Positions 1,884-60,446 are shown, numbered from the stretch's first letter. The stretch: 64,000 nucleotides of DNA from Orbicella franksi (GCA_964199315.1 OZ116707.1:28086001-28150000); one strand, 5' to 3'. The notes: generated by a model not told the origin, from the letters alone. Numbers and translations are program-made.

Positions 1884-2621
1884 ATGAACTCCAGCGAGAG
1901 AAAAAGATCGCTGACGAGCGAAGTCGCGGATGAAACTACGAAGAAAAATGGTTTTGAGGAACGACGGCTTCGAAGAAAACTTGAAGACATTGAGCAGCAC
2001 GCTCTCAAACAAAAGAAGAAACGCAACAACGAACAGCTGGAGTATGCTTTGGAACACCTTTCTCTTGAAGATATGGACACGTTTAACAGTCTCACAAGGA
2101 AGATTCTCGAATCCAATTTTCTTCCACCAATTAATCGTAAACCAAGAGGGAGTAACACTGAAGACCAACGTGGGGGAAAAGATGATTTACTGGTAGAAAG
2201 GCTAAGAGGCTCTAAGATGATAAACAAATATCTAAAAAGTCGAAAATCAAGAAAGCTGACTAGAAGTTTGTCCACAGACTCAGGACTAACGCCAGGTCCT
2301 ACGAATGGAAAGAACGAGCCTGGTCCCTATTCTGCCTACTTATTTAAAAGAAGGGTTGTCGAATCAGTTTCTCTTCCTACCCGCCGACCGATAGCCACAG
2401 CAGAAGTTCCCAGACTTGATGAAGCGACGCGTCGAATACATTTTGCTGACAATAAGAATGAGAACATTAAGTCACATTCAAAGCGTGTAGCTCAAAATAA
2501 AGCATTCCCAAGGCCTGTTGGCCCTCAACGGAAAATTCAACACAACTGTCTTAGTGAGGCTATAGAGTACAAACTTAGAATGCGCGAATTGCAACGGAAA
2601 TCGCTTCAAGAAAGCAGCTGA
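1884..2621 (+). CDS. Uncharacterised basic, probably disordered protein (245 aa) with N-terminal CCDC190-like coiled coil
   Basis: ATG-started 245-aa ORF in AT-rich DNA. KKNGFEERRLRRKLEDIE...NNEQL aligns ungapped with the 29889 ORF (13/33 identical). Also contains FLPPI, RSLS and RRIHFAD. The CCDC190 resemblance is recalled, not searched. Confidence 0.72.
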   Translation: MNSSERKRSLTSEVADETTKKNGFEERRLRRKLEDIEQHALKQKKKRNNEQLEYALEHLSLEDMDTFNSLTRKILESNFLPPINRKPRGSNTEDQRGGKDDLLVERLRGSKMINKYLKSRKSRKLTRSLSTDSGLTPGPTNGKNEPGPYSAYLFKRRVVESVSLPTRRPIATAEVPRLDEATRRIHFADNKNENIKSHSKRVAQNKAFPRPVGPQRKIQHNCLSEAIEYKLRMRELQRKSLQESS

Positions 2622-4916
2622 AAGACAACTAAGCGCTATGTTTTTCTACGGCATTTTTTCGCTCACTTAGCAAAAAATATTCAACGAACTGAACTGCTGC
2701 AGGGAAGGATCAATGCAAGAGTGACTGAGCAAAACGTTGTCAGTTCATGTGTAGTGTGTTTCAGTATGCCGGCTTGTTTTAACAATTTGTTATGAATGTA
2801 TTTTCGAAGAAATCATTTCTCCTGGCTCCGTGTGCGTGTATATTCCAAATGCGATCTTGTTACTAACAGTTTGGTTTTCTATAATTCTTTTACTGTGTTG
2901 GAAGTTTTGTTTGGTCGTGAAATTAAACTACTCGAACTAAATGTAATTTAACTTGTATTGGTTTCCATGAACCCTGTTTTTATTTATTTATTTATTTTTT
3001 TGCCAGCAGTTTTTCTCTAGAGGCGTTCATATTTGTCAAACTTTTCTCCACATCAACAATCAGTTCTAATAGGGAGAAGTTCTCTCTTGAATAGGACACA
3101 TAGAGCCACCGAATACGTACCAAAAGTGGCAAATGAAGTTTATTTAAATACCTTGTTCAAGAGCCAGATTCTCTTGAAGAGGAACAATGAATATGCATTA
3201 CAAACATTAACGAGAATTTCGTTGCTGACCAAAAATTATCACGTGTTCTTCCCGTGTTGTTCGTATAGAATCATAAAGTGCACGATATGCTGATTAGCAG
3301 TTGTGCTAGCTTTCATACACATTGAGCTTCGTTCTGTTGTTTTGGTTTTGCTCACTGAGGATCGTTAATTGAATACGAAAACAATAACATCGAATAGCGC
3401 TTCTGCCAGTCGAGCCTGTAATAATAAAGAAACGGCTGTGACATATAATCAAGATGATAGCCGATCATGAAAATTCCAGAAGCGCAGAAAAACTTCGGTT
3501 AACACTTGTTATTGACTAGTTAAACATTTCCCGGGCATTTTGTTTTGAAAGGTAAATTTCAAATCAGAAGAGTGATTGCTTCACTTCCTTGTTGAAGACA
3601 AACGTTAACAGAAGCAATATCGAAACCGCTGAATGTTGAACAATGAACTCATTATCAGACTATTAGTGGTGTTCCTGTGGTTGAACTCTTTCAATATCTT
3701 GCTACTGCTTGAAAGTGATTACAGCTAAGGTTGGTCCGTAGAATGAAGACTGACTTATGGACTCTTTCAACGGTTCGTTATCAAATTTACATTAATATGC
3801 TTCTGTCTTTACTTCAAGAACTGCCGCATGATCACTGAGAACAAAAGCGGTACTTAAACACGTGATGTAAACATGCTACGAAGACAAGCAATATCGGCAA
3901 ATAACCTTTAATGCTTAACCTCTGAATTTGGCCCAAGGGATACTTATGTAAACAAAGTAGAATCACCACAACACTCTCTTTTTTTTTTTATTGGTACGAG
4001 GATACAACAGAAAGAATGTTGTTCCTTCCTATAGCCATTTCCGGCTCTTTGTTTCTTGAACACCTTTATTTTTTTGGTTATGTTATATGCGTACAGCCAC
4101 TTCCACAAACATAGGTCCAGCGTCTTACAAGATTTGTCAGCTGGTTCCTCTTATGTAGTCATACTGATTCACAAGAGTAGATTTAGTTCTGCAACACACC
4201 ACCAACCAAAGAACAGTTTTCACACCACCACATCTTATAAACGCAGTCAGTTCAGCCCATTTCGTATTCTTCGATCCTCAGTTCTTACATTTTCCCAATA
4301 ACATAACGTTTCTGGATAAATACATTGCGTGTATGTCTCAGATTTTGCGTCCTAGAATTAATGGCCCTTTTTCCCTTTCCGGGATGTAGCTTTAGAAGTA
4401 CACTTGCAAATGGCGACTTTAAATAGGCCAGAACGCCGGGATGAGATAACGGCCAAAAGAATGCCTGACTCATAAAAATTCTTGTAGAAGCCAAACCGAG
4501 GAAATTTCTACTTTGACCATGCATCAGATTAAACAAATGTTAGTGAATTTTCACCTAATTGAATCAAGATAATTCAAGCCCTCGGGCAAGTTCAGTGTAT
4601 TTTGGTAAAGTCAAAACAACAATCCAGCATCGTCTGTGAATAAATATAATTTTTCACGTTGTTATTATGAGATGATTGTGGGTCGGCATGTAGATTCGTT
4701 GGTATGCAAGTAAGTATCTTGCTAAGAAGTGGGGCTGTTTACTGTGTCTGATCAATAAACAAGATGCGTCCTTGTTCCCATGCGACTGGTGTACTAAGTT
4801 AGAAATTATTTTGTTTTCGTGTCCCTGCAGAGTGATCAGACAACAAATGTACCGGCAATTACTCTGCAAAAAAGATGTCACGCCGTAAAATCACTGAATC
4901 ACAAAGGAATCGAGAC

Positions 4917-5128
4917 CCCCGGGGGGGGGGGGAGGTACTTTGGGAATGTCTGGGTGGGGATGTGCCGCTGGGACCCTGGAACCCTTAGCCTATACCGGAG
5001 CTAATTCAGCTGAATTTTGCTACCCTATACTAGACTAAACTCCCCAAATCCCCCCATCTATCGACACTGTTGAGGCTGATTTGCGTAAATTTAAACTTGC
5101 TGATTTGATTTTTTTATATTTTTGAGTG

Positions 5129-5166
<38 letters not shown>

Positions 5167-5196
5167 CCAACTAGTCAGTTTTGTCAAAAATTATAC

Positions 5197-5235
<39 letters not shown>

Positions 5236-6130: not shown

Positions 6131-6757
6131 ATGTTAACCACCGGAGTAAATACCATTCGGGGTCCTAAGCGTTCTCTTCAAAACAATTCTCAATTGTCCG
6201 TGCCGGAAAGGATGAGCGCACAAGATTCACAAGTTAACAGTCAAACTAATGATGGCTCAAGAAACAATAAGCAAAAAGTGACCCTCGCTTCAAGTGAGGG
6301 ATTACGGCTATATTCGGAACTTTTAGAATCGAGATGTGACAATGCAGAGATGTGTGACATCCCTAACCATAGACGTCTTGTAAGGTCACAGTCAGAAAGC
6401 AGTTTTTCTCTTCAAGCTTGGAGAAATGTTTCTTGGACCACGGACCAGGTAACTTTACAAGATTTACATTGCGGCAACAACAGAGGGATGAAGGAATGGA
6501 GATTACCAAGTATACCTCAAAGGGGTAACAATAAAGCCGGCGAAGTCAAGGAATTCACACCGTTAACTTCAACAACGCCTCGAAGAAGAAGTTTATGCGT
6601 TTTACCAGACTTGTCAAAAGAGGGGGCTGAAAAGCGGGTACGGTTTAGAGCCTCAACACCTCTGACGAAACATCAGGTTGAAAAAGTGAACAATACTTTT
6701 GATTCGCTGGAAAGCAAATCACAGAATTTGGTCAATTGGCTCAGAGACCAACAATAA
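6131..6757 (+). CDS. Uncharacterised probably disordered protein (208 aa) with C-terminal K-x3-L-x2-WL-x2-Q helix
   Basis: ATG-started 208-aa ORF ending FDSLESKSQNLVNWLRDQQ. Contains RSQSE, RNVSW, KRVRF, LPSI and LPDL. AATAAA at 7131-7136. Confidence 0.75.
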   Translation: MLTTGVNTIRGPKRSLQNNSQLSVPERMSAQDSQVNSQTNDGSRNNKQKVTLASSEGLRLYSELLESRCDNAEMCDIPNHRRLVRSQSESSFSLQAWRNVSWTTDQVTLQDLHCGNNRGMKEWRLPSIPQRGNNKAGEVKEFTPLTSTTPRRRSLCVLPDLSKEGAEKRVRFRASTPLTKHQVEKVNNTFDSLESKSQNLVNWLRDQQ

Positions 6758-7589: not shown

Positions 7590-8770
7590 CAGTCATCAGT
7601 AGACAGCAGGTGGCAATAGCAGACAGCAGATATCAGCTACCATTCAGCATCAGATGACACACAGAAGAACAGGAGTATGCAGAAAACGGCAGACCTGAAC
7701 AGGCATTAGTTTGTCAGTAGGAAGCAGGTGGTAATAGCAGACAGCAGATTACAGTCATCATCAGTATCAGGTAACAGGCAGAAGATTAGCAGTATGCAGC
7801 AGGCAGCAGGCAGCAGACATGAGTAGGCATGCATCATTCAGCATCAGGTGACACTCGGAAGAGTAGCAGTATGCCGCAGACGGCAGACCTGAGCAAGCAT
7901 CAGTAGGTCAGCAGTAATCAGAAGGGGGCGATAAAAGACAGCCGATATCAGCCAGCATCCAGCATCAGGTGACACACCGAAGAGTAGCAGTATGCAGCAG
8001 GTAGCAGACCTGAGCAAGCATCAGTCTGTCAGCAGTAGTCAGCAAGTGGTAATAGCAGACAGCAGATATCAGCCAGCATTCAGCATCAGGTGACACACAT
8101 AAGAGTAGCAGTATGCAGCAGGTAGCAGACCTGAGCAAGCATCAGTCTGTCAGCAGTAGTCAGCAAGTGGTGATAGCAGACAGCAGACATCAGCCAGCAT
8201 TCAGCATGAGGTGACACACATACGAGTAGCAGTATGCAGCAGGTAGCAGACCTGAGCAAGCATCAGTCTGTCAGCAGTAGTCAGCAAGTGGTGATAGCAG
8301 ACAGCAGACATCAGCCAGCATTCAGCATGAGGTGACACACATACGAGTAGCAGTATGCAGCAGGTAGCAGACCTGAGCAAGCATCAGTCTGTCAGCAGTA
8401 GTCAGCAAGTGGTAATAGCAGACATCAGACATCAGCCAGCATTCAGCATTAGGTGACACACATAAGAGTAGCAGTATGCAGCGGACGGTAGACCTGAGCA
8501 AGCAATCAGTCTGTCAGCAGTAGTCAGCAAGTGGTAATAGCAGACAGCAGATATCAGCCAGCATTCAGCATTCAGCATCAGGTGACACACAGAAGAGTAG
8601 CAGTATGCAGCAGGCAGCAGATCTGGGCAGGCATCAGTCTGTCACAGCAGTAGTTAGCAGGGGGCAATAACAGACAGCAGATATCAGCCAGCATTCAGCA
8701 TCAGATGACACACAGAATAGTAGCAGTGTGCAGCAGGCATCGGTCTGTCAGCAGTAGTCAGCAGACAGCA
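7590..8770. repeat. 121-bp GCAG-rich minisatellite, about 9-10 units, degenerate at the edges
   Basis: The unit anchor GTAGCAGTATGC recurs at 7863, 7984, 8105, 8226, 8347 and 8468 (exact 121-bp period), then at 8597 and about 8720. The period is not a multiple of 3 and the frames contain stops. Confidence 0.92.
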
Positions 8771-25253: not shown

Positions 25254-27311
25254 CATCATGACGTTTCTTTTTTTTTATTTATGTCTAGCTTTCTCTGAAG
25301 TTAGCGCTTAAAGGAACATTGAGTAGATATCTCCAAAACGTGAAACGTAGTAAGAGTTACTAAAAATTAAGATAGGCACTGAATAAGCTTAATGGCGATA
25401 AAGATACGTTTTGCAGAAGAAACCGTCGGAATTTCAACCAGCAATAGATCAATACAACGGAGAGCATGAGCATTTTTCGTCTCTGCAAATAAATCAGAAA
25501 ATCGTAGCTGAAAGTGCCTTTCCCAATACAAGTCGCTGCATCATTATAAATGTTTTAACATGGATAGTCAGTATTTTAGGAACTCGTGGTAGATAACAGA
25601 GCTAACTGGACCATCAAAATTGACCTTGCTCAATCCGAGCAGTTCAGCCTTTCGCTATTTAATCAGTTTAAAAATAACTTACGTTTTTAGCCAATGGTGC
25701 ATCATGATCACCAAGACCGTTTCTTCTTAATTTATTAACACAATTCAGGAAACATTCTATAAACTTCAAATGCCAAACCATCATATTGTAACACACTAAA
25801 CTCGTCATTCTAAAATGGGAGAAGCCATGTCTCTTATCTGCTTTGCGTTGGTTCCAGGAAATAATTGGTAGACAAGAAACTATAGTCTCTATGTAAAAAT
25901 AATTTTAAGTTCCAGCATTCAAATTTCTGGCCTTAAGAGATGCTGCAAATCGATATGTGTATATTAAGGTAAATTATAATTAAGATTAGTGATAATCAAA
26001 AATTAAATCATAGTTGCCAGTATTATTAACTGGATTCAGTTTTAGCCGGCGCCAGTTATTTACTAAGTGAAACATGGTAAAGATGCCTTATACTTCCGAG
26101 GACGACTTATCATTCGAGAAAAAAGGCTTGTGTAGGTTCGCCACTATTAAATGCCCTGTGGTTTACATGCACTCAGTAAGTTTTATACGACTTATACATT
26201 GTTATGCAATGTTTCGTTTTCCAGTTGTTTTTGTAGTTTTGTAGAAGCAGTTTGACTCGCAAAACCGATCTGTAAATTAGTTTCGTAGAATAATAAAATT
26301 AAGTTAATTCTAAGTATTGTACACATCCATTCTCACGTTTGCACCAGTATGTTACGCAAGAATAAGCTTATAATTAAAGATTAAATGGATATTTTCAGAT
26401 TGAACCAGTCCTACATTTATTAAAGGTTTTGTGTTCATTGCAGGATTTTTAAAACTCAGTCGAAAAGTTACCAGGAGCTGCAGGAATCCGAGGCTCCTAA
26501 ATGCAGTATCGCTTAATATACACCGTTTTTAGTCATAAGGAAGTTAGATACCCTCAAAGTGACATTGTAACATGAAATATCAAACTCATATGTGCATCAA
26601 ATCAATGATTAGTGCTTATGCGCCCTCTGATTGGCCGCTCAAACTCCAGATAACTTCTACCGTATTTACCTTGTATAAATAATAATCTCGAGCACTGTAC
26701 GAACCACGACTAACACATAGTAAAGCGGATCCCTTTCTTTTGATGTTAAAGAAACCAGGGAGACTTCGTCCCAATGGATTAGTATATGCCAATTAAGAAA
26801 AGATGATCGTCGTCTTGAGTATATACTCGTCCAGTGATGCTGGCCTTTGACCGAAGCCTTTGTTGTCTGTCTTTACTGAAATATGCAAAACTACTACAAG
26901 TAATCTTGATGGCACTTCGAATCACGTGAATCAAAAATTGGACACTTTTATTAGAGTTAATGCAATTAATTGGTCAGGGACAGTTGCTAATACTATTGTC
27001 ACGAAAGGCATGGATTAACTCTTTTATCGCTGATATTTTTTTTATGTTTAGACAAATAGTTGCAGAATAAATAGTTATTAGGTTAGAGATCATCAAGGCT
27101 TACCTCAAATGACTCTGATAACTCTTGTCCGCGCTTTGTTTGTTGTTATTGGTGATGCTGCAGTTTTTTTGTCGGGCTCGCAAGCCACAGTTAGCTTCGA
27201 AATTACCAATTCAAAGATGTCGTTATCACCAGAAACTTACGTGGAGTGTCTTTTATAAGGTCGGCTTTGAGTGGTGAGTACGTGATTTTGTGACGTAATG
27301 CTTCACGGTAC

Positions 27312-29757: not shown

Positions 29758-29888
29758 TGGCTGTTGTTTTGTTCTCTTTGGGTTAAATCCACTCGGAGCA
29801 CTAAACAGCATGCAAAGGTTGATTTCATTGCACAGTTACAAAATCACAGAGAAAATGTCAGCCGAGTTTATCTAAACAAGACACAGAA

Positions 29889-30452
29889 ATGAACGAAGTG
29901 AAACGGAAAGCGACGTCGAAATACTTCGAGCAAGAAATTTGGAACAATTTGTCGAAGCAAAATTCTTTTGAAGATCGGCGACTGAATTTGAAATACCATA
30001 AACTGGAAAAGGACGAGTCTATTACAGTTAGATCATGGAATCAGGAACAGCTGGTCATGCTGAGGAGGAATAAAAAGCTGCACAGCCTCATGGACATGAA
30101 TTACTCAAGATACCTCACTCTGCCAACGTTAACCCCAGCCCCGCGCTCCCGCTCAACAACTGATTATACTCGAGGAAATACTGGATTAGGGTTGCCATCT
30201 GATGTACGATCACGGCCTCGTTCACATTCAGATCATTCGAAAAGAGACAGGCCATCGACGAAGCAGCCGAAAAGACAAGAGGAGGTCAGTTTTCCAGCCG
30301 TTTCCACCACATTGAATGTACGGAGCTCACATTCTGCTAATTCACAGCGTTCAAGCTTATCAGATAGCGAAATAACAAAACAAAATAGAACGAGTTGGAC
30401 TCGACCATCCACCCAGCTTCATAAGAGAGATAACATCACGCCTCGGCTGTGA
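29889..30452 (+). CDS. Uncharacterised basic, probably disordered protein (187 aa) with N-terminal CCDC190-like coiled coil
   Basis: ATG-started. KQNSFEDRRLNLKYHKLEK...WNQEQL aligns ungapped with the 1884 ORF. Contains LPTLTP, RSRST and RSHSD. Acceptor-like CATTGCACAG ends at 29835. Confidence 0.75.
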   Translation: MNEVKRKATSKYFEQEIWNNLSKQNSFEDRRLNLKYHKLEKDESITVRSWNQEQLVMLRRNKKLHSLMDMNYSRYLTLPTLTPAPRSRSTTDYTRGNTGLGLPSDVRSRPRSHSDHSKRDRPSTKQPKRQEEVSFPAVSTTLNVRSSHSANSQRSSLSDSEITKQNRTSWTRPSTQLHKRDNITPRL

Positions 30453-30975: not shown

Positions 30976-31113
30976 NNNNNNNNNNNNNNNNNNNNNNNNN
31001 NNNNNNNNNNNNNNNNNNNNNNNNNNNNNNNNNNNNNNNNNNNNNNNNNNNNNNNNNNNNNNNNNNNNNNNNNNNNNNNNNNNNNNNNNNNNNNNNNNNN
31101 NNNNNNNNNNNNN
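30976..31113. other. Assembly gap (138 N)
   Basis: Run of N. Confidence 1.
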
Positions 31114-31119
31114 GCAACA

Positions 31120-31231
31120 GAGCACTTTTTCCGCGTTTACATAGCCTCATCTAAACACGAGGAGGGTTGGGAGAATTCTCACAGCCCCGCGAGTGTTTAG
31201 ATGAGGTTATGTAAACACGGAAAAAGTGCTC
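31120..31231. repeat. Long inverted repeat (hairpin), probably part of a MITE-like repeat cut by the gap
   Basis: 39-bp arms at 31120-31158 and 31193-31231 are reverse complements at 37/39 positions. Confidence 0.85.
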
Positions 31232-31506
31232 TACTGCTTTTATAAAATAATTCTCAAAATTAGCGCGAATCTAAAACGTCACAACCGCGTTTACATACTC
31301 TCATTGACCAATGAGAGTGCACGTAGTAGCTCAGTTTTTATAAAACTACAGGTTCATGAACTATTCATTACATAGTTTTGTCTGTTTAAAATTTTCAAAT
31401 CAACAATTCTTGTGCTCGTACTAGGATGGTTATATCAACGGCTCTCGATTACTTTTCAACAGCTCTGTTGGACCACCATTTATTATCTTAGTTTCCCTGA
31501 CAACAG

Positions 31507-32361: not shown

Positions 32362-33363
32362 ATGGCTTCATCTCAAGTACTTGCAGGGTTCCATACTCTG
32401 ACAGACGTGATCGGTCTTCCTGGAGATTTGCTAGTAATAGTAACAATCGTCTTGGAAAGACGATTTCACGCCCTGCGGCACATTCTCCTCGCCAGCCTCG
32501 CAGTGGCCGATTTTTTATGTTAAATTCTTGTAAACGCATTTCGCATTGTCAGCACAGCACAGAAAATATGATTGCACGGTCAAACAATGTGTTATCTTCA
32601 TGCATGCCTTTTGGTTTTTGTACTTCTATCTCAACACGGTTCTTCATCTGGTAGCCGTGTCCTATGATCGATACAACGCCATAGTGAGATCGCCTTTGAC
32701 CTACAATGGCACCATTACCATGTCCGAGGTGGTGATCACGGTTTTCATTTGGATAGCCCCGATACCTTTTACCGTCAACCCCGGCTCCTTGACTGAGGAG
32801 TTTAAGATACTTTTATAACTCAGAAGCATTCGTCTGTGTGCAAACGTGGTCAGCAGAGCAGAGAGAGCCAGCCATTCCATATGCCGTTACAATCTTCTCC
32901 ATTCTTGCACACTTCTTGCTCGTCGTTTTGATGAACTGGTCGGTTTTGAACACGGCGAACCATTTGCAGGCAGACATACCCATGCTGACTCCGGACACCA
33001 GTTACAAGAGAGAGCAAGGAGAATTCGTGAACGTAAGGCATCTATCCGGCGATGTTTGTATGATCATTGGGGGATTCGTGCTGTGCTATCTCCCCATTTG
33101 GATAACTAGCCTTTGCAATGCATTTCTCAAGTCGCAAAAGCTTCCAGCCGTGGTCATTCAAATCACAGGGTGTCTCTTCTTTCTGAGTTCGCTGGCTGTG
33201 CAACCCAGTCATCTATTCCATTCTAAAAAGAGGCTTTCGGACCCTTTCGAGAAGGTGTCAAGAATGTGTTTAGGCGGATTGGAGTTGGTGGAGGTGCTAA
33301 CCACATCAAGCAGACTTCAGTTCGTGGTCGGGTTCAGCCCAGGCAGCATGATTTGCACGAATA
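32362..33363 (+). pseudogene. Intronless class A (rhodopsin-like) GPCR pseudogene
   Basis: TM2 LASLAVAD, TM3 VSYDRY, TM6 GFVLCYLP and TM7 NPVIY are spread over different frames. In-frame TAA at 32521, TGA at 32569, and several frameshifts. The 3' end is approximate. Confidence 0.9.
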
Positions 33364-35875
33364 AGTGTAAGCTTTGGCCGAGTAATCACAGAAGCAGCGC
33401 GCCTGTGAAGGACAAAATCAGCACGAACCTCCCAACGCCAAGATGGACGATATTACAAGAGCATGTTAACTGAACACAAAAATAAACTGGCTACGTTTTT
33501 TTCCGAATTAATCGGATTGGTGTCATTTTTGTCGTCTGAAACTCAAATAGAGCTGTCCTATGGAAAGTAACGTTGCTTATAGCTAGTTGGTTTCTTGTGC
33601 TGCACATATTGCGAAAGCCGTTTCTAAACAGAGGACATAAGGATTTTGCACTCAGATTTTAATTGTTAATCGTTTAAGTTTTCTTAAATTATTGAATTGA
33701 ACGTTATCTATAGCTGCAACAAAACAAAAATGAAGGCATGTTTCAATTCTGTATAATGTAAGGCTTTGAATGACAACATTGTTTTAGGTTTCTGTCTGAC
33801 TTTCGTTTTCTGTAAAACTTGGTTCAGTAAGGTTAAAACATTTCAACATTACACATAGCAATTAGAATCGAATTTCTCTTAAACTAATTTCGCTACAGTT
33901 CTCTGAAGTCTATTTTCAGTCATTGAAGCAGCACTATTTTAAGACCGTGATTTTATTGAGATACCCCTGCATATAGCTCTTACTCTTTTAACAGAACACT
34001 TCAGTTAGGCGGTGAATCTTAAAGTTCAATTAATGAGGGGACTCGAAAAAAAAAACTGAACGTAAACTTTCAAAAGGAAACCCGCTGTACTACGATAAAA
34101 AGCGTAGAAATGTACGAGGATGATTTAATGTCAATGTTCGCATCGAAAAATTGAAAGAAACTGACTGCACCTTGAAGATCTCTCAATTCGAATCCATTTT
34201 TTGTCAACTTTTAAACAAACTGACAACTTCAGCTTTCTGGCGTTAAAAATAATCTTGTAAATCCTGTGTCTTAAATCGTTTCATATGAACGTGATCATTT
34301 ATTACTGTAGAACTTCGCCTTGTCTTGCTCCTAAATCCCAAGTTAAGACTTTAGATGTGACGAGTTCAGAATGAATTTGTCTTTAGATTCTCTTAGCCAG
34401 TCCCCCACCCTGAATTGCTCATATGCGTTTTTATTCCTTCCAATTTAAATGGTCACCGTCACTGAACAAACAATATAATGCTACAAATCAACTCTACGTC
34501 TTGCAATCAATCTGATCTGAACAAGCTGAGAGAATTCTTGCACTCATTAGCTGAGAGAGTATAGAGAATATTAAACGAACAGATGACACAAAAATCGACA
34601 TTTTGAGGGGGCATCATAATCCAAGAATCAAAGAGAGCGCAAAATCGCGTCTACTTGACAGGCATTTAATAACTATTTCTTGTTTTTCATTTTATTTACA
34701 CCCGAAAGCATAATTGACCTCTTATGATAGGCACGAAGAATTTGCTAGCGAATTAGGACGAAATCCTGATGTGGAGTGGCGCGCTCAAATGTTTTTCTGC
34801 TAGCGGCCAACGAATTCCAAGAAAATACCTAATTGGCTTTTTACAACTCAACGGTTTCAGATTCCAGTCACGGCAATTTTTCTAGTTCTTCTAGTGGGGG
34901 TTCCTTTCTTCAACAACGGCTGGTAATCAAGCCTTTTTTTTTTTTTTTTTTCCGAGCGACATCCAGATTGGTCTCTTTTAGAGATTTAATTAAAATTTTG
35001 CAACGAGCATCCCCGACATTTTCATATGAGAAGTCCCTCTCTGGGCACAGTTACAGCTCAAACACATGTGCATCTTTTTTACTCCTTCAGTGTAAAAGAT
35101 TTCTGCACAAAAAGTTATATTCTTCGTGTTTGTTTTCTTTCAGGGGCACGCAGTTCCCCAGGAGCATTTACGTTGACTACCCTAACTCCATTCCTGAAAA
35201 TCTGAAGCGACAACTGTCTCCCACGTCACGCATCGCCGTGCATGATAACTGCACTTTGCCATGCAGCCGGGTTGAGTCAAATTTCGCGAGGAAACTAAGA
35301 GAGCCCCGCGGCAATGGAAATTCCACAAAAAGAAAGATACTCGAAAATAGAAAAACACCGAAGAGAGTAATATTTAAGAATAAAAGAACAAGGATGGCTA
35401 AAGATGGAGAAGATTACACTAAAACGGCCGTTTACAAACGAAGAACTTGAAAATTTAGGCTAAACTTTTCAAGATGCTCAAACCGTGACGAAGCTCCTTT
35501 AAAATGATAATGAATATTATTATGAAAAGTAATAATTATGCAATGCTACTCGAGGAAACTGAAAAAGAGATAAATTCTGTCCGTTAAAAAGGGTCGTGTG
35601 AAAACTCCCGTAGGTACTCTTTCTAAAAATATATAGATATGTTTAAGTGTTGACTCATTGGCTTTGACTGGTATACGGAAGCTCCGGGTGTTGAGCTTCT
35701 GTTTTGGAATAACTTTCCATCGATTTACGTCATTTTCTGACTTTCTGAGAACATAGAAAGATGTTGACCTAATGGTGTCATGTTATTAAATTATGTTATA
35801 ACCAACGAAAAATATTTAATCTTGTAGTGAAAGCCGAGGGCTATCTCTTAAACGCCAAACTACCCTAAGGTCTTA

Positions 35876-37173: not shown

Positions 37174-37824
37174 AGCTTCTCTCAAACAGTAAGCCAAGTT
37201 AGTCATCCGGAACCGCATGATATTTCAACAAGCGTGTGAGTACTCACGTCATGCATTTCTGAATTTTGTCTACATGACCCTACATCAACAGAAATCCAGC
37301 ATTTTACAAGTTCACGTGATAAGCGTACCTGCAACGGATGTCAGTAGAATGATATTAAATTTAAAATATAAGGTTTCACACCTAATGTCAATGACTGCTC
37401 CCAGAACTATATCGTCAACACGTGCATTTCAGGTCCAATGTGACTTTGTCACGTTTATTTCTTAATTTCATTAATGTTTATACCGCGGAAAACAAAGAAA
37501 TTAAAGGACCATTCAGTTGTAGCCGCAACTGAAAGCAATGCAAATGCTTGGCAAAATTTCCTTTGGTTATTATCATAACAGCTTAACAATACTTGTTAAA
37601 CGAATATCTGTGATTCGTGCGGACAACAAAGAGTGTCTAAGTGGATGTCATAACCTGGTGTCAACACCCACAGCTATTGTTTGATAATCACGCACCATGT
37701 CGTGACCTGTACGTGATGGATATAGACTGAAGTCCGCATTTCTGTTTCTCAGTTCATCTCTGTTTTCACAGGAGACACATGATAGTTCTGCAGTGAGTGC
37801 AGACGTCCTGACTCAACAGACACA

Positions 37825-38475
37825 ATGAGGACCCTTAGAGCAGCGACGCCGATTCCTCTGCCTTCACATTACGATGAAGCGGTTTGTCCAGAAATTTTGC
37901 CTTCAAGGAGATCAAGTATGGCTTCCACTACGACTCATCTGCCTACGTTGTGCGAGGGTTCGTTGGACTGTAACATGTTGTCAAGATTTGTGCCACCCGC
38001 ATTTTCACCGTCAGAACTGGGAAAAACAGAGATAATAGCGCTTGTAGGATCGCCTTCTCATCCCAGAAGAGGACAGCTGTTTAAGTCAGCTTCAGAGAGA
38101 AAAACGAGATCTCAACAGAACAATCTCTTTCCAGACTTGAGCAGGAGAGAAATAGCTAAAGAAAACGTTGATCCCGACAAAATGCCGGCGGAATGGGTGA
38201 AAAGACTCCGACGGCCCCAGCAATACGAACTGACAAGAACAGTGTCGAATCCAGTCATTTCTAAAACGAGAAATTCTACGCTGGGTGCTAAGACGTCGAG
38301 CCCTCCAAATTCTAAAAGTTTACCACGACTTAACAGTACCGAACCCTCAAGAACGATCACCGAAAATGAACATTCTGCAGAGCTAAGAAGACACATCCAA
38401 CAAGAAAATATGGACTATGATATCTTATCGACCAAAGCTGTCATCTTAGAACGCTTTCTGAATAGTCAGAAATAA
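37825..38475 (+). CDS. Uncharacterised S/P/R-rich, probably disordered protein (216 aa) with C-terminal K-x3-L-x2-FL-x2-Q helix
   Basis: ATG-started. Ends HIQQENMDYDILSTKAVILERFLNSQK. Contains RRSS, KSASE, RTVSNP, LPTL and LPRL. AATAAA at 38952. Confidence 0.75.
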   Translation: MRTLRAATPIPLPSHYDEAVCPEILPSRRSSMASTTTHLPTLCEGSLDCNMLSRFVPPAFSPSELGKTEIIALVGSPSHPRRGQLFKSASERKTRSQQNNLFPDLSRREIAKENVDPDKMPAEWVKRLRRPQQYELTRTVSNPVISKTRNSTLGAKTSSPPNSKSLPRLNSTEPSRTITENEHSAELRRHIQQENMDYDILSTKAVILERFLNSQK

Positions 38476-48715: not shown

Positions 48716-48799
48716 TCGCATCGCATCGTCATCGATTTCGCACCAAAACGCAAGCATAATCAAACATTTTGTTGTCCCTCAAGCTATTTAGCTTACGTA

Positions 48800-52200: not shown

Positions 52201-52680
52201 AACAGTTTGTTCGCATCCGATTCTCGTCTTGCTGTCTTTTCCTCTGAGTTTGTTTACTTTAAAGTTAGCTATTCTCCAGCAACAAGGATGAAAAGAAGCC
52301 CACAAATATATATAAAAAAGTAAACTGACATTTGAGACGTGACCACAGTATCGCAAGGTTAAGTGGCCGTGAATCGCGGGTGTGTCGGTGGGTGAGTCTT
52401 GGCCGAATGAACATTAAGTTTTGTACCTTGATTACTGAGCAAGTACTATCAAGTACTACTGCATTCAGCAAACACTTTCAAGAGTAATCCAAGTGCATCA
52501 CATTTTCCTTTCGTACGCCTATTTTTTTGATGGACCAGCGGTAATGTCGGTGAGTTAAACAAAGTCTCTTGTTGTTGTTAGGTTGCTTGCTCTGACATTA
52601 TTGCTTCAAGTTCCAACACATATGCGTTTTACCGAGTGTTTCACGAAACACAGACAGATATCTGTTACAATTAGCTATTA

Positions 52681-52866
52681 GTATAAATCTACGGCATTCT
52701 ATCATGAAAGCCGTTTTCTTATTGGCTACGCTACTCACTATCTATTCTGTTCTAGATAGTGAGTAGCTTAGAGGTGTGTGGTTGTTGACAAGATGAAGGC
52801 CGATTCTTCGCGTTTTCGCAGTATATGTGTAGATGATTTAGATCAAGTTTTGAACGACTGGCAGAT
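52681..52866 (+). repeat. Dispersed repeat, copy 2
   Basis: Shared blocks with 36283-36466. Confidence 0.8.
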
Positions 52867-55007
52867 GTAATTTATAATAGAGTAATCAGATTATTCGTTC
52901 TCGATTACGATGCGTGGAAGTTGGCTTCGTCAATTATCACGCGATAGCAATGCCGAGCTCAAAGATAATCTAACTGTTAAATATAGCTATCAGGTCATTA
53001 CAGCTGTTGGATGATTTTGATATCTGACAAGATTATTTTTTAGTCTCATTTTCCGGATTTATTTTATCGTGAAAATGGATAGCAGTTTTATTTGCAACTG
53101 TTACATGTAGCGACCGGCTCCTCGGCAAAGACTCGCCGAACTTAATGATTAAGCGTTTTAGTTTTTCTTTCTCTTCACTGCCGAGCAAAAAGCAACGCTT
53201 TTGTGCGCAAGAGAAGTTTCTCGAGCTCAGTATCCACCCACCCGCCCCCCTTCCTTCCTCCCACATGCCTCGTTCCTTGTCCACCCTGACTCACACTCGT
53301 GTTTCACTGTTTCAATCAGTAAAGCTTTGAATCGGATGTTAAACTTCATGTAAGAGTCTCAAGTGTCCATTCTCCTTTGGGGCGGAATGCGGAAAGGGTC
53401 GTACACCTCTGTCATAAAAACGGAAGTTTGTGGTTTCTGGAACCTCCACGAAGTCAGCAAATATTTGTCCTGTTCTTCGGCTAGACAGCAAAGTCTCAAA
53501 GGTCTGTTTACTGGTGTCTGACTCAAAATATCTGGGCTTTCTGTTAAAAGATGGGAGATTCCTAATTGAACTTTGCTGGTGAGTGGACTAATGAACATCA
53601 TGGGTGCGTCACTTAAGATTACTGTAGAGAATTGCACCATGAAGCGGATGACGAGAATCACATGCTAGATTTTGAAATGTCGTCTTAGTTGCTAGTACAA
53701 AGGACCATAGGCAAACTCTTGGCTAAGGACCGACTGAAAAGGGGGCTACAACTAAACAAAAAAGTTTCACGAGTTCCGAGGTACAATCCTACATGACGTT
53801 GTAATTCGCTTGTGCCACGTTGTCCGCCTCGGACTAAAGGGGGGAAAATGCATGGCGGCTTTACGGCGAGAACTCAATGTATTTTGAGCAAATTAAGGAG
53901 GCTCGAAATTGAAATACCGTCGAAAGCTAATCTTTGAATTTAGATAGCCTATACCACAATATTCAAATATGGACATGGCTTTTTTTTACCATTGGCAATG
54001 ATTGTGGTAAACCTTGGTTTTTAAGTGAGGCTGACTTAGTTGAAATCCAGTCATTCACTGTTTTCGTACGTCAATGTATGGTGGTTTGACAACTACAGTC
54101 ACTACGGGACTAAGTTTTAAAGTTTTATGAGTAACCTGCGAGACCGAGATTTCCTTCTCTTTCTTCTCGGTTAGAGACAAGAAGGAACTACTGCTTGCAA
54201 CCGCTCTATCGTTTGATCAACCGCCGTCCAGCGACCAGGGACGAATAAGTAAAAAATGCTGGTTTTTGAGAAGTTTTTACCGGTTTATAACTTACGCATG
54301 ACAGATAGTATTCAAAACGCTGTATGTTTGCAAGGCTGCTGACAATATCTGCTGCCCTGTGATTGACTGCAAAATGACAATTGGCAACAGTACGTCACGA
54401 ACTCATCAAATTCACCTAACTTTCGCTGTTTGCACAGTTCCAGAAACTATTGCTGCACATTACTTCACCTCACCAAGCAATTCACCGCCAAAGGAGCATG
54501 ATGTGAGGGTTGACAGACAGGTTATATAGCTTAGGTTTTTAATTATTCCAAAACCGTTAGTTTGTTTATCTGCAGGAAGCTTGCAGTTTGGAAAGCACGC
54601 GTCGGACAGCGTAGTCTTGAATGAAGCCAATTTTGGTTTAATTCGTCCTTTTCTTTGATGCTCAGTACTTCGTAGAAATTTCCAAAATTTCTAATAATAA
54701 GCGGTGGAACAGTTTGAATTGAGGTAACTCGTCGAACATAACTAAAAATTTGATTGCACGTAATCGTTTCTTACGCAGAGCACGACACATGCGACATGCG
54801 GACGTAGTTCGCGCATTCACGATAGGAAATCGAGCGGTTGCGAGCAGGGGTTCCCTCTCGTCTCTCACTGAGCAGAAACATAAGGCATCTCTGCCTCTCA
54901 GGGTATTTTGTGAGTAAAACGATAGTAACTGATAGCACAGGATTTTATGAGGTTCAACAATTAAGAGAAGATGAATATCGTCTAATTGATTTAAGATAAC
55001 TATAGTA

Positions 55008-56060
55008 TAGTGGAACCCCGTTAATACGACCATGGGTCATGGAAAATTGGTCGCATTAATGGGGTGGTCGTATTAACGAGGTAGGGTCACATTATGATGC
55101 AGCACGCTTTAAACATGTACTGTACATGAATATCATTAATTCCGCTATATATCAACCATTTTACAATTATTCTTCAACCTTACAACAGCAATTCATTGTA
55201 ACTGAACAAAACCAAGTACATGTAATGCGAGAAAACAATGACGTCTTAAAGTTCCTCAACAGGATATGGCCTCTTATGAAATGTCTGTTAATGTTAGAGC
55301 CGTTATTTGTCAGATTGTGTTTGTCCTCATTCAGGAGGGGGGTGAATAGGTTTTCGGATCGACGGATTTGGCCTTAGAAAGCGCTTGGATTGTGGATTTT
55401 TGCGGCAAGTCGAGCGGATTCGCGGATTTTGAAACACAGTGGATCGTGGACCAGTAGTGAATTTTGGCGCGAATTTCGGATTCTGCCGGTCTTGATGTTC
55501 GGATCTTGGGTCCAAAACGAAATTTGGATCATAGATCTTTCTTCAACCTTGGTCGGTATGTTAATGAGTTCATCCAAGTCATTTCTTTTTGCCAACGAAG
55601 CTCATTGATACTGTTACTAGAATTGTACTGTGTTATTGTCATCAAGCATGTTGCCTTCTTTTAGGCTATTCAGTTGTGCAAAATTAACAATGGCATTCAC
55701 TTTTACCAGTTTGCCTTTGCACTCTTACACTTCTGTTTCCGGATGTGGTCGTGGTTTCGGATTTGAACAAAAATATCGGCGGATCGACGGATTTGGTGAA
55801 AAAAAGGCACGGATCGGTGGATTTGCATACCCCTATTCACCCCCCTCATTCAGCTTCCTCACCAGTCAATTTAACCGGTCGTATTAATGGGGTAATTTTA
55901 TAAAGAAAAATAAAGACTGAGCACTCCAAAAGGTGGTCGTTGGTCGTAATAACGGGGTGGTCGGATTAACGGGGTTTTCATATAGGAGAATGAGTGGGCT
56001 TTTGCCCGGGTCACTACAGGGGATGGTGCCAACGGGTGGTCGTATGGCAGGATTCCACTG
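55008..56060. mobile_element. Tc1/mariner-type non-autonomous element carrying a nested insertion
   Basis: Ends (T)AGTGGAACCCC and GGATTCCACTG, flanked by TA at 55006-55007 and 56061-56062. Subterminal GGTCGT repeats at both ends. Confidence 0.8.
55335..55847. mobile_element. MITE nested in the mariner-type element
   Basis: Perfect 16-bp TIRs GAGGGGGGTGAATAGG and CCTATTCACCCCCCTC. Flanking direct repeat ATTCAG at 55329-55334 and 55848-55853. Internal CGGATT repeats. Confidence 0.9.
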
Positions 56061-56586
56061 TACCTCCTTTCAAATGAAAGATCTCCAATTGTGGTAAATA
56101 CTTTGTACGATAGTAGGAGCTGGTTGCGATTTTGAAATAATTGATTTTGAAGGACTGTTCAAGGCATGCTGGATCAATATCAAAGAAACTAGGATATTTC
56201 TTAAAAGCGCTTGTAGATTTTTTTTCAAAGCCGAATAGCTATTACCCTCCCAGCAGACGCTCTTAGGGCTCGTCACGCCAAAAGATCAATGCACATGCTA
56301 CAATGCTGTTATTATGTCATTGCGTCAGGATGTTCACACCGCAAACATGACAACATAACGTTCTTCGAATGTCGTTATGTCGCGACATAGGGGGAACGTT
56401 ATGTCGTTAAGTTAGCGGTATGAGCATCTTGATATAGCGACATAATAGCAACGTAACGACATAAGAAAAATCATCAACGTAACAATGTAACAAAGAACCA
56501 ATCAGAGCGGCGCAAGCATTGTTGAACCAAGCCTACCAGTCAAGTCTGATCAGGAATGTTAATTTCGATCACCTGAAAGAGTATTG

Positions 56587-56727
56587 ATGTCGTGATGTCC
56601 TTATGTCGTGATATCGTTATGTCGTGATGTCTTTATGTCGTGATGTCATTATGTCGTGATGTCATTATGTCGTCATTATGTCGTGATGTCATCATGTCGT
56701 TATGTCGTTATATGTCGTGATGTCGTG
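56587..56727. repeat. Degenerate ATGTCGTG/ATGTCRTT 8-mer microsatellite
   Basis: Tandem ATGTCGTG, ATGTCATT and ATGTCGTT units. Related TTATGTCG and CGACATAA words occur in both orientations at 56340-56465. Confidence 0.9.
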
Positions 56728-56816
56728 TGACATTCAGTAAAACCAGACACCAGGAACAAAGACGCTTTTCCCGCCACAAAAACTTTTAATGTCACGCTAA
56801 CCCTCCACGATGTGAT

Positions 56817-58399
56817 CACGTGCTGTCATTTTCCACACGCACGTGAACGTAATTACTGATCCCCGGGCACTGGATACGCCAGAAATAGTAAGCGGAATGC
56901 ATTTTACGAATGCGTTTTTTCGGGTTCGAGATATCCCGCTGGGCAACATTCAAATGTACCCATTACAACGTGTCGACCAGATAAAACCTTTTAAAATCAA
57001 CAACTCCAGCTACTTAATTGAGAACATGTCTTGTTTCGCCATAACATATCTCTACCATGTTACCCTTTCTTGCCTAAGTTAGTCGTAGACTAGACGTACT
57101 TAACCTTCACTTGTTCAGAGCAGGCGGCTTCTGTGATATTATTGCATAATCTAATACTCGACAAAATCGTTAACAGGCGCGTGAGGACTGTTACCATGCC
57201 TACAAAGTAACATCACGTGTGCCTTCACGTTGTCCTATGAAAACGTGGAATGTAGACATTCGGAAACCGGGAACGTCACCATTACAAATGTGATAATTGC
57301 TCGTGAATGCAAATTACCAACCACGTTGTCTAGGTGAAAAATCTGCCCTACAATTTTAATTAGAAAGAGACAGACGTCTTTGGGTCATGTACAATGCATT
57401 TTGCCTCATTATTAAAAAAAATAAAAAATAAAACAGGACAGGTGCGACCTACTTGTTTCCTGTGGGGCAATTTTTCTGAACATTACTTAAAACCTAGATA
57501 TTTGCATTGGGTAAGATTGATTTTGCGGTTTAGCAAATTTGCAATATAATCATTGTGATCTGAAGAGACCGTCTTTCTTACCTAATGGGAATAAACTTTT
57601 ATGACTTTCAGCCAGCTGTGCACAGCTAAATCGCAATAGAATATTATCGCTGTTGAATGACGTTGTAATAAAGAAAGTAATCACTGCAATTGAAAACACA
57701 TTATTTAGGTTTATCTGCATATTGTTCTGATGTAGTTGATTGCTGTAATGATCACCAGAAACCAGCTGTCTATACCATTTGATGAATATTTAGCAGATAA
57801 ATATCTACCTAGCCATGTCTGTCCTCAATACCAGAGTTTCTTGATTACCGTTGTCTACCTTCGGTACCGGTATTCTTTCTCTTCAAACTGCAGAAACGTT
57901 TCGTGGGATATGCATTTATTTTTACTGTTTATTTTATTTATTTTGAAAGATAACGAGAAACTGAAAATATTGCGTAATGAAAACCTGCAAACTCCTATGG
58001 AACATGAAAAGACCTCTAAGCATCGGGCTACCATTGTATTGTTACATAATCGGACCGGCGAGAACGGTTGTTAGCCGCACGTGAGGACAAGACTATAATG
58101 TCTGACCCTGGAGTCTGACATTTACAGTCTGAACCATGACTGCAGGGCTGCTGCCAAGTGTTTTCACGTGCGAATTCACCATTTTCTCTTGCAACGTAGT
58201 GGCTGAATATCATTTTCATTAAAGAGAGGTCTTTGTGGTTTCAATTTGAAGACTTTAAAGTCATTAACTTAATTCATGCTTAACAAAGAAATGTTTCAAA
58301 TGGCTTTAAACGGTCGTTCCGTTTCGCGTTGTTTAATGTTATATAACTTAAAACCAGCCGTACATTAACGTGACATACAAGACATGCACACAGCACGTG
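56817..58399. promoter_or_regulatory. Cluster of six canonical E-boxes (CACGTG)
   Basis: CACGTG at 56817, 56840, 57214, 58078, 58165 and 58394. Confidence 0.5.
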
Positions 58400-59603
58400 A
58401 AGCGAAATCGAGAAGCGATTGGATAACTTAAAATATGGAGTAATTTTAAGTGGCAGATGTACAGAATATCAGTTTAACTGAGTTTACTTAAACCACCTGG
58501 ATAAGAATACAGTCACGGCATCACGCCAAATTGCAAACGTTTGCACCTCGAGAAAGGCAGCTTTCTACACCTTCTTAGCCCGTCATTTAGTACTTAAAGT
58601 TGTTCTTAAGTCTTAAGGTAAGTTCAACTATATTCTGGAAACTTGATTGGAATGTTTGCTCTATTTATCCAAGATCGAGTTAATTATTTTGTATTTCCTT
58701 CGTTGGGCATTGCTTCTACCTCATCTTCATTGCTTTTTGTTCACTTACTACTTTGTTAAGAGCTGTCCATGATTTCTACCTCCTAAAATCGATCGTACTG
58801 TTATCCGCGAACTCTAAGCTAGTTTCACTGCTCCGCTACCACGCGATGAATCATGTCACAGCTCGAGTTTTGGCCGCCATGTGGCAAACGGTGGCAGTCT
58901 GCGGTGACTGCAGCCTGAAGACGCCGTTATATTTCGTGGGACATCATTCAGATCCCATTCAGCTCTGTATAAAATGCGCGCGGCTTAAATTAAAGCAGAT
59001 CTTTGTCTTAATTGGTTAAACAAATATGCTCTTCTACCAACAAACCGTCATAAAACTGGCTTCGTGGCATGCACTCCAAATAAAAACTGTATTTGTAGGG
59101 TAATGCTTTGTTGTCTCACTTTAATTGAATTGTGTAAACCTATGTGTAATAAAATTGCCGACCGGTGAGTGAACAAAGGGCCAATACAAGAGTTTGTTTG
59201 CTATGCAGGAGTTGTTTGACTCTCATTGCTAATTAGGCCGCCAGTTGGAAATCACGCGAGCACGATCGCAGATTTAATATCAAAGAATGTTTCTTACATT
59301 CAAACGTGAAGAACCTAAATTCCCGTATAGCCCTTGAAAACGACAGGAAGTTGACAAGAAGCAGTGCGGCCTTGGTTTGATGCATTTAATATAATAGGCT
59401 TAAGTTAAGGTGAAGGTATGCAAACCGGAACAGAATTAGATGACAGGTCATTTATTTAGTTGGGGTAATTTACAGGGGTAGTAATCGATACTAGGTACAT
59501 TCCTAAAGGTTCTTGCCGTGTTGATTTTTGGCGGCCTTTGACAGCAAATTCTATTTTACCTCTTCTGACATCAGGTGACGTACCTTGTCGCTCACAGAAC
59601 AAT

Positions 59604-60446
59604 ATGAAGGAAATACTAATGATGAAGAAGACACACAATAGCCTGCTTCCACTACGTGGAAAAATATCGCCTCCCACGATTTTGAATTGCCTAAACCATT
59701 CTACGGAGCAGAAAAATTACAAAAGCCATGAGACCACAAAACCTGTGGGTGGAAGAGAGCGTTTATTTTCCGCGTCCACGATGAGCGCTTCTAGCTCTAA
59801 ACATGGTTCAACTTTCTCTGAAAGAGACTTCACTCCACCGTTTACTCCACCGGCAAACGGTGATCGCGCGTTCCTATTTAGAAGGCCTTCCGAACATTTT
59901 CTTGAAGTCCTAGAAGAAAATAAACAAAGACCAACTGTACCTAAAGTACGATCTTCCTCTTGTTTGCCTCCATTGGGGAAAACGACTCAAGGAGACGACT
60001 CGCAGAAAAAGAATTTAAGAGGAACTAAAATTGCCTTCAGTGGTTACCTAAACGGAGAGGATGTCGTCTCTCGCCAAGTTGAATCTAATGGTGGGCGACT
60101 GCTGGCTTCTGAGCAAAGGAGCGATCCGACAGTAACAAACCTCGCTAACAAGAAGATTCTGCGAAAAAGTCACTCTCTACCTTTAATCAAGCCATACACT
60201 GCTTTTACCGCAGGAATAGACTGTGTTAACGTTTCTGTCTCGGGAAGTCACACACCAACCGATATCTTGAACGATGAACAAAAACTTAACACCTGTGACC
60301 GTATGGACAATGCGCCTATCGAGGAATATTCAGAAGAACTGTGCGATGAAGGCGACCCACTTGAAGATGATGAGGAGGAAACGTTAGAGAAGTTTAGTAT
60401 GATATGTCACTGGCTAAAAGAATGCGAAAAAGCCAAGGTCGTGTAG
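59604..60446 (+). CDS. Uncharacterised S/P/K-rich, probably disordered protein (280 aa) with acidic stretch and C-terminal K-x3-I-x2-WL helix
   Basis: The ORF track starts at a TTG (59538). The first in-frame ATG is at 59604, just after acceptor GTCGCTCACAG ending at 59597. Ends EEETLEKFSMICHWLKECEKAKVV. Contains RRPSE, RSSSCLPPL, TKIAF and RKSHSLPLI. Confidence 0.8.
   Translation: MKEILMMKKTHNSLLPLRGKISPPTILNCLNHSTEQKNYKSHETTKPVGGRERLFSASTMSASSSKHGSTFSERDFTPPFTPPANGDRAFLFRRPSEHFLEVLEENKQRPTVPKVRSSSCLPPLGKTTQGDDSQKKNLRGTKIAFSGYLNGEDVVSRQVESNGGRLLASEQRSDPTVTNLANKKILRKSHSLPLIKPYTAFTAGIDCVNVSVSGSHTPTDILNDEQKLNTCDRMDNAPIEEYSEELCDEGDPLEDDEEETLEKFSMICHWLKECEKAKVV

Follow-up and report, generated by a model that had tools for sequence, protein, structure and literature searches.

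Several described systems resemble parts of the gene cluster reported here. One class of small, intrinsically disordered regulators of phosphatases and kinases comprises PPP1R1/DARPP-32, Inhibitor-2, and ARPP/ENSA. Class IIa histone deacetylases (HDACs) and CRTCs carry phosphorylation sites of the CaMK/PKD/SIK type and 14-3-3 sites, written LRKTxSxP. Cnidarian genomes contain clusters of taxonomically restricted genes, including those for secreted small cysteine-rich proteins (SCRiPs) and skeletal matrix proteins. The locus analyzed here lies in a stretch of 64,000 nucleotides (nt) from the coral Orbicella franksi (GCA_964199315.1 OZ116707.1:28086001-28150000), the whole of which is referred to as the window. 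It holds six genes, o1884, o6131, o19291, o29889, o37825, and o59604, named from their window coordinates; a further gene, g7, accompanies them in other species. The finding consists of two undescribed, lineage-specific protein families, A and B, and one singleton in an old cluster.

The cluster proteins share with the phosphatase and kinase regulators a length of 170-280 residues, predicted disorder, RRxS-type sites, and a small number of short conserved motifs. Unlike those regulators, they show no homology in Pfam or PDB and lack a conserved RVxF motif, and what defines them is an amphipathic helix at the C-terminus together with the invariant LPx[LI]. The o59604 site L-R-[KR]-x-x-S-L-P-x-I and the RxxSLP sites of g7, of which there are three, appear to resemble those of class IIa HDACs and CRTCs, a likeness of motif without homology. 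As in other restricted clusters of cnidarians, the genes belong to one lineage, local duplication is apparent, and Pfam domains are absent. Unlike SCRiPs and skeletal matrix proteins, the cluster proteins have charged N-termini and no Cys pattern, are basic and not acidic, and are predicted to be disordered. Their N-termini are charged or polar (MNSSERKR, MQRKELKL, MNEVKRKA, MKEILMMKK), and no signal peptide was seen by inspection alone, no predictor having been run.

The set comprises open reading frames (ORFs) that start with ATG. The coding sequences are as follows.

o1884: 1884..2621, plus strand; 245 residues, family A; N-terminal shared module at residues 1-83 (1884-2132), invariant LPPI at residue 80 (2121-2132)
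o6131: 6131..6757, plus strand; 208 residues, family B; invariant LPSI at residue 125 (6503-6514), C-terminal module at about residues 176-208 (6656-6754)
o19291: 19291..19815, minus strand; 174 residues, bridging member of family B; invariant LPKL at residue 90 (19537-19548), C-terminal module at residues 137-170 (19306-19407)
o29889: 29889..30452, plus strand; 187 residues, family A; N-terminal module at residues 1-81, invariant LPTL at residue 78 (30120-30131)
o37825: 37825..38475, plus strand; 216 residues, family B; invariant LPTL at residue 39 (37939-37950), C-terminal helices at residues 182-214 (38368-38466)
o59604: 59604..60446, plus strand; 280 residues; islands LLPLR.KIS, RRPSEHFLEVL, LPPL (59964-59975), and LRKxxSLPLI (60177-60188), C-terminal helix EKFSMICHWLKECEKAK at residues 256-279 (60369-60440)

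An earlier sequence-only reading had grouped these six ORFs as a hidden cluster, and the ORF listing reproduces its coordinates and its size range of 174-280 residues exactly. Eight ATG-started ORFs of at least 174 residues occur in the window, compared with 0.03 expected from 100 first-order Markov simulations; the GC content of the window is 38-40%. The proposed composition, rich in K, R, S, and P and poor in hydrophobic cores, agrees with proteins that are polar, consist of 66-72% disorder-promoting residues, and carry a net charge of +6 to +21 in five cases and -2 in o59604. In line with the same reading, blastn detected no nucleotide similarity among the six ORFs. Pfam returned no domain for the six proteins, including no transposable-element domain, and no family at threshold for 69 orthologues and the orthologue alignments. 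Profile searches of PDB gave no match, and when the o59604 family profile was run against the full library of 1.84 billion representatives, just 10 clusters emerged, none of them named. Look-alikes from the ESM Atlas (TEX33, MACIR, INKA1, and BRCT clusters) scored at most 0.85 and were treated as noise.

Orthologues were collected in three database searches, two of which used mixed alignments as the query to cover several ORFs together. These returned 45 orthologues of o1884 (lowest identity 44%), 18 of o6131 (every one at least 74% identical), 13 of o19291 (lowest 50%), 59 of o29889 (lowest 45%), 35 of o37825 (lowest 40%, including Acropora RefSeq entries named 'uncharacterized protein'), and 33 of o59604 (lowest 36%, plus more distant relatives). 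The positions of start and stop and the length agree among orthologues, and the frames are uninterrupted across 13-59 species or assemblies, every indel being in-frame. RefSeq gene models for orthologues exist in Acropora and Montipora, where identity is 40-46%. All orthologues with a named source come from stony corals, so the cluster is restricted to Scleractinia, and the low identity to Acropora and Montipora places the window outside Acroporidae. Named orthologues come from Pocillopora, Oculina, Desmophyllum, Acropora, and Montipora, and all are labeled 'uncharacterized' or 'hypothetical protein', as the sequence-only reading had anticipated for annotation pipelines. At 40-64% identity over the full length, with the islands kept, these are the same genes: XP_067054494.1 (Acropora muricata), LOC141875711 (A. 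palmata), P5673_007470 (A. cervicornis), XP_068681779.1 (Montipora foliosa), pdam_00015126 (Pocillopora damicornis), OS493_027233 (Desmophyllum pertusum), and ACROYT_G017503 (Oculina patagonica). Their records enter no family or cluster relationship, and a literature search for the identifiers found no paper that mentions them.

Selection was measured as the ratio of nonsynonymous to synonymous substitution (dN/dS) by the Nei-Gojobori method, in comparison with a related species whose proteins are about 85% identical, and with a Fisher test for values below 1. All six ratios lie significantly below 1, namely 0.17 for o29889 (p = 6e-9), 0.22 for o59604 (p = 3e-9), 0.33 for o1884 (p = 3e-5), 0.40 for o19291 (p = 0.003), 0.49 for o37825 (p = 0.02), and 0.57 for o6131 (p = 0.043). 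For reference, the disordered last exon of the neighboring RBM24/38 gene gave 0.45 in the same comparison. The six ORFs of the related species contain no internal stops, and their indels are likewise in-frame.

Spliced transcripts extend the gene models upstream of the coding exon in two cases, with the following exons.

o19291 mRNA exon 2: 18413..19843, minus strand; 28-nt leader, full coding sequence, and 3' untranslated region of at least 878 nt; acceptor CAAAAAG/CC
o19291 non-coding exon 1: 27104..27219, minus strand; donor GAG/GTAAGC, 5' end not defined
o59604 5' leader part of the coding exon: 59575..59603, plus strand; acceptor AG at 59573-59574; contigs L022 and L016 start or switch here
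o59604 upstream non-coding exon, 3' end: 52480..52549, plus strand; donor TCG/GTGAGT at 52550; holds an upstream ATG at 52544

Two independent RNA-derived contigs span o19291, one from the Joint Genome Institute (JGI; L011, Ga0099807_1065433) and one from Logan (L012, SRR6255878, with an Illumina adapter at its end). Bases 1-116 of L011 and 1-30 of L012 map to 27104..27219, and both contigs continue at 19845/19843. Position 27104 on the minus strand is joined to 19843, 28 nt before the ATG at 19815, and the leader contains an in-frame stop. For o59604, JGI contig L022, which derives from a congener with identity of about 92%, connects the counterpart of 52549 to 59575, 29 nt before the ATG, and a second contig begins precisely at the exon boundary. 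The junction is spanned by an upstream ORF of 12 codons (MSVTYLVAHRTI*), formed by 52544-52549 joined to 59575-59607, whose stop overlaps the main start as ATGA. The related species (L008) retains both the donor and the upstream ATG, and the upstream ORF is intact in the congener transcript. The remaining contigs (L003 and L004 from Logan, most of L013-L021 and L023 from JGI) are collinear with the genome and carry no splice information. The proposed architecture of a non-coding first exon followed by one coding exon therefore holds for the two genes with spliced contigs. The acceptor dinucleotides placed at 29835, 37771, and 59597 fared less well: all three exist, but o59604 uses 59573-59574 instead of 59597, and the related species has GG in place of AG at 37771.

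The six ORFs are real, conserved genes under purifying selection. This follows from the ORF excess, orthologues with kept start, stop, and length, dN/dS below 1, spliced transcripts, and RefSeq models.

Relationships among the genes were assessed by hhalign on the six orthologue alignments. For full-length profiles, the best of 30 reversed-profile controls reached P = 0.0065; for profiles of the last 40 residues, the best of 21 reversed controls reached P = 0.0064. On these comparisons, two old paralogue families are resolved at the protein level, with o1884 and o29889 in family A, and o6131, o19291, and o37825, together with g7, in family B. The family A pair matches by blastp at E = 6e-7, with reciprocal matches across dozens of orthologues, and by hhalign at P = 3e-5 and 4e-4 over 70 columns that start at Met1 in both. 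The module of this family runs from Met1 for about 70-80 residues (K.N.FE[ED]RRL ... N.EQL ... LPx[LI] near residue 80) and is present in o1884 and o29889. The shared N-terminal feature that had been noticed in two proteins is thus a significant similarity.

Family B is defined by a module of about 33 residues, H[IV]x[QK]E..[FY]....[ST]K...L..[WF]L..Q, which ends within about 10 residues of the stop and occurs in o6131, o19291, o37825, and g7. Full-length profiles of o19291 and o37825 align at P = 4.5e-5 over 38 columns that reach both C-termini, and those of o6131 and o19291 at P = 3.8e-4 over 28 C-terminal columns. With the last 40 residues, these values become P = 1.3e-7 and P = 5e-7, respectively. 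The g7 profile matches o19291 (P = 2e-6) and o6131 (P = 1e-6). In leave-one-out runs, a hidden Markov model (HMM) of the 33-residue module ranked o19291 (E = 1e-5) and o6131 (E = 0.024) each as the top non-training ORF among 689 window ORFs. Moreover, P0087, the most divergent o19291 orthologue, has blastp matches to all three B members of the window. The same HMM found no further member among the 689 ORFs. A 40-codon ORF at 4450-4569 (plus strand) gave a weak match in one leave-one-out run (E = 0.003), which is probably due to chance because its translation is unconvincing.

Outside the window, o37825 is present in three paralogous copies per contig in two other coral assemblies: P0077/P0078/P0079 on a 2.2-Mb contig and P0090/P0092/P0095 on a 72.8-kb contig. 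These point to a lineage-specific tandem expansion of this family B member.

The C-terminal helix that the sequence-only reading had assigned to four proteins holds at profile level for o6131, o19291, and o37825 (P from 1e-7 to 5e-7, last 40 residues), and for o59604 at motif level only. Invariant in each case, Φxx[WF]L is placed 14 residues before the end of o59604 and 9-13 residues before that of the B members. Membership of o59604 in family B is not established.

The arrangement of the cluster is conserved. In a related species (ENA ERZ25878340), a single 698-kb contig carries the six orthologues together with the RBM24/38 exons, with order and strands unchanged and spacing nearly so. Offsets of these seven features from the o1884 orthologue are 0, 4.4, 16.2, 21.8, 27.1, 36.6, and 57.6 kb, compared with 0, 4.2, 17.4, 22.5, 28.0, 35.9, and 57.7 kb in the window. 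A species of about 45-50% identity (ERZ26692694, 1.76-Mb contig) retains o29889, o37825, and o59604 collinear on one strand, with starts at ~1,104.7, ~1,112.3, and ~1,142.5 kb; its o1884 orthologue is about 50 kb off and inverted, with g7 nearby. Order, strand, and spacing are therefore alike in the species of about 85% identity, and the arrangement is kept in part at about 45-50%. The g7 gene was located as follows.

g7, in related and distant species: L005 7187-8161, minus strand, 324 residues; L001 6772-7575, minus strand, 267 residues

It lies ~1.8-2.4 kb upstream of the o1884 orthologue in divergent orientation, at a position whose equivalent falls just past the left edge of the window. 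Its C-terminus (...RLFEWLK[ED]QTD) is the family B module, and it also has a conserved LPQV. Conservation of the cluster goes back at least to the divergence of Acroporidae from the lineage of the window. These data support an old, syntenically conserved cluster of diverged paralogues in which linkers drifted and short islands stayed invariant. The proposal of a single old tandem family stands as regards the conserved cluster, the diverged paralogues, and the drifted linkers, but a single family for all six is not supported: no link between A and B was detected, and o59604 is unplaced.

Short motifs were examined next to the families. LPx[LI], proposed as common to all six proteins, is unchanged in each orthologue (36/36, 55/55, 14/14, 13/13, 34/34, and 33/33, the last at two sites), and only 0.5-5% of the 4-mer positions in these alignments are as conserved. 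An unbiased scan covered all class patterns of 3-4 residues in seven shapes and was restricted to class-invariant columns to avoid post-hoc bias. It returned one sole pattern common to the six families, [LIVM]-P-x-[LIVM], with p = 0.007 on shuffling among invariant positions. The distance of LPx[LI] from the C-terminus is 84 residues in o6131, 85 in o19291, and 89 in o59604.

Other islands are specific to a family. In o59604, LLPLR.KIS, RRPSEHFLEVL, and LRKxxSLPxI are kept down to the most distant relatives, the last varying as L-R-[KR]-x-x-S-L-P-x-I; L186, S191, L192, and P193 are invariant, and the site fits 14-3-3 mode I/II (R-x-x(-x)-S-x-P) as a motif match only. Those of o1884 are ERLRGSKM...RKLTRSLS and KIQH.CLSEAIEYKLKMRE, and those of o29889 are RPRSHS and TSWTRPSTQLH. 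Many such islands would seem to resemble sites of basophilic kinases (RRxS, RxRSxS, LRKxxSLP), a resemblance only. A PP2A-B56 motif (LxxIxE) in FLEVLEE was dropped, position 6 not being conserved, and SxIP, PxIxIT, LxVP, CtBP PxDLS, and class II SH3 ligands were dropped as each, by eye, occurs in one or two families only.

AlphaFold2 models based on the orthologue alignments agree with the predicted disorder. The o37825 model has a mean predicted local distance difference test score (pLDDT) of 52.8, with substantial helices only at residues 182-197 and 200-214 and a 4-residue helix at 123-126. The o59604 model (mean pLDDT 50.0) has a helix at residues 256-279 (pLDDT ~80) and a 3-residue helical turn at 95-97. 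Both proteins are thus predicted to be long disordered chains that end in a C-terminal helix.

Together, we favor, with a probability of roughly 0.7, an ancient syntenic coral cluster that encodes disordered, mostly basic, non-secreted proteins, composed of families A and B, formed by local duplication, and of o59604, with a putative modular docking or adaptor role. Each gene has its entire coding sequence in a single exon. Families A and B would have arisen through local duplication, with drift of the linkers between islands, while each family retains an invariant LPx[LI] island and Ser sites of the basophilic-kinase type; o59604 has the architecture of family B, a long disordered region with a terminal Φxx[WF]L helix. 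The proteins may act as modular docking or adaptor proteins, in which the terminal helix could anchor each protein to a partner or paralogue and LPx[LI] could bind one common partner. Phosphorylation may regulate these contacts, possibly via 14-3-3 binding at RxxSxP.

Several points weigh against this interpretation. The direct comparison of o6131 with o37825 is not significant (P = 0.07-0.3), and their link is transitive because it runs through o19291 and g7. Profile matches between o59604 and family B are marginal (P = 0.0055-0.09) and do not improve on the best reversed control, and this protein is not picked up by the B-module HMM. No profile link between A and B was detected (P at least 0.1). 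LPx[LI] is short, L and P are frequent in disordered proteins, and its p = 0.007 comes from shuffling within the six families. Transcript support covers two genes of six, and for o59604 the junction was observed in a contig of a congener. Finally, we infer the adaptor or regulator function entirely from sequence.

The cluster illustrates how a few invariant islands can suffice to recognize hidden orphan genes as diverged paralogues. It adds two or three new coral protein families with defined modules and motifs, fit for Pfam-type resources, and offers LPx[LI], the terminal Φxx[WF]L helix, RRPSEHFLEVL, and LRKxxSLP as short motifs. The gene models also correct ORF-based callers through the 5' non-coding exons, the upstream ORF, and the nesting of RBM24/38 in an intron.

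Among the alternatives, a common origin of the seven genes (A, B, o59604, and g7) in a single ancestral gene or divergent gene-pair unit, with LPx[LI] as the last shared relic, survives best, although we regard it as unlikely. The invariance of LPx[LI] in all six families (p = 0.007), its similar distance to the C-terminus in o6131, o19291, and o59604, and the invariant Φxx[WF]L at 9-14 residues from the end in four families argue for it. So does a layout that occurs twice, in g7, o1884, and o6131 and again in o19291, o29889, and o37825: a minus-strand B gene, a plus-strand A gene that diverges from it, and then a plus-strand B gene. However, profiles of A and B show no similarity and the o59604 match is marginal. 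Duplication of a three-gene unit would pair o6131 with o37825 and is unsupported for that pair, as o6131 is nearer to o19291 and g7. Furthermore, no orthologue of o6131 below 74% identity was recovered, nor any beside the o1884 orthologue in the distant species, which suggests a younger origin.

A bolder version, more doubtful still, would make all cluster genes copies of one ancestral divergent gene pair in which LPx[LI] was kept because the products compete for, or deliver cargo to, one partner. The cluster would then be a scleractinian-specific, phospho-regulated adaptor system around RBM24/38, which might share the regulation of the member whose intron holds it.

It is highly improbable that the six are unrelated, lineage-specific neighbors alike by disordered composition only. 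The absence of DNA similarity and the non-significance of most pairwise profile comparisons are consistent with such a view, as is the behavior of two motifs. [RK]SxS, which had been proposed as a linking motif, occurs at least once per shuffled protein with P = 0.33-0.53 and is poorly conserved in three families; RVxF is also at chance level. By contrast, the position-anchored A-A and B-B matches beat all reversed controls, P0087 links three B members by blastp, and one invariant motif is shared (p = 0.007). For the A pair and the B set, unrelatedness is largely refuted; for o59604, it may hold.

Marginally less probable again is a family of regulators or inhibitors of protein phosphatase 1 (PP1) that dock via RVxF, as Inhibitor-1/DARPP-32 does. 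Small size, disorder, basic charge, and RRxS-type sites would fit such a role, and RVxF-like strings occur in o1884 (RRIHF), o6131 (KRVRF), and o59604 (KIAF). Yet the string is kept in 18/36, 10/14, and 19/33 of their orthologues, respectively (50-71%), and is missing from the o19291, o29889, and o37825 families, so that the link drawn from its presence in three proteins fails. The chance of at least one loose RVxF per shuffled protein is 0.25-0.38, and none of the six proteins and 69 orthologues has a Pfam match to PP1-regulator families. With three families lacking the motif and the others keeping it in no more than about half to 71% of orthologues, the hint of a PP1 inhibitor is unsupported.

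That the ORFs are spurious, non-coding frames or relics of transposable elements, as the lack of known domains and the ORF-based gene callers behind public assemblies might suggest, has next to no chance left and is already refuted by dN/dS below 1, spliced mRNAs, and the eight long ORFs against 0.03 expected, along with unbroken frames across 13-59 species or assemblies, single-copy occurrence at conserved places in the gene order, no extra copies inside the window, and no transposable-element domains.

One known gene lies within the cluster and is context, no member of its families.

RBM24/38-like gene: 23790..25253, plus strand; the RRM exon starts within the ORF at 23790-24029, and the last exon lies in the ORF at 24351-25253

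The assignment is based on the RRM sequence (...FVGGIPYH...KGYGFV) and a Pfam RRM_1 match on the orthologous ORF in L006, and the exon shares 82% identity with its counterpart in the related species. The leader intron of o19291 (19844-27103, 7.26 kb, minus strand) encloses the whole RBM24/38 gene on the opposite strand.

Further features of the window lie between the genes, one of them in the assembly itself.

Assembly gap (N): 30976..31113, no strand; intergenic, 524 nt past the o29889 stop and outside every ORF

Its flanks are collinear and in the same orientation in the related species and in a 99.6%-identical JGI contig (L010) from the same or a very closely related species. Directly to the right of the gap, at 31114-31240, lies an inverted repeat with arms of ~45 nt that forms a hairpin like those of miniature inverted-repeat transposable elements. 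A tandem repeat at 7835-8737, about 1 kb downstream of o6131, has a 121-bp unit in 7.4 copies with 91% matches and is locally GC-richer with a strong AT skew. A 953-bp unit is repeated in tandem at least three times at 14866-17071, the copies being 98-100% identical over the 300 nt reported. An ORF at 32838-33473 (plus strand) matches only the C-terminal half of a rhodopsin-type G protein-coupled receptor domain (7tm_1, E = 6e-6, under the gathering score) and may be a fragment or pseudogene; the region of about 3 kb around it, at 31.5-34.5 kb, has no counterpart at that position in the related species. At 58710/58711, every spanning contig has ~125 extra bases (L013, L019, and L020, 97.6-99.2% identical, and, where measurable, L015 and L023 from other species), a difference that reflects either an indel or a collapsed repeat in the window.

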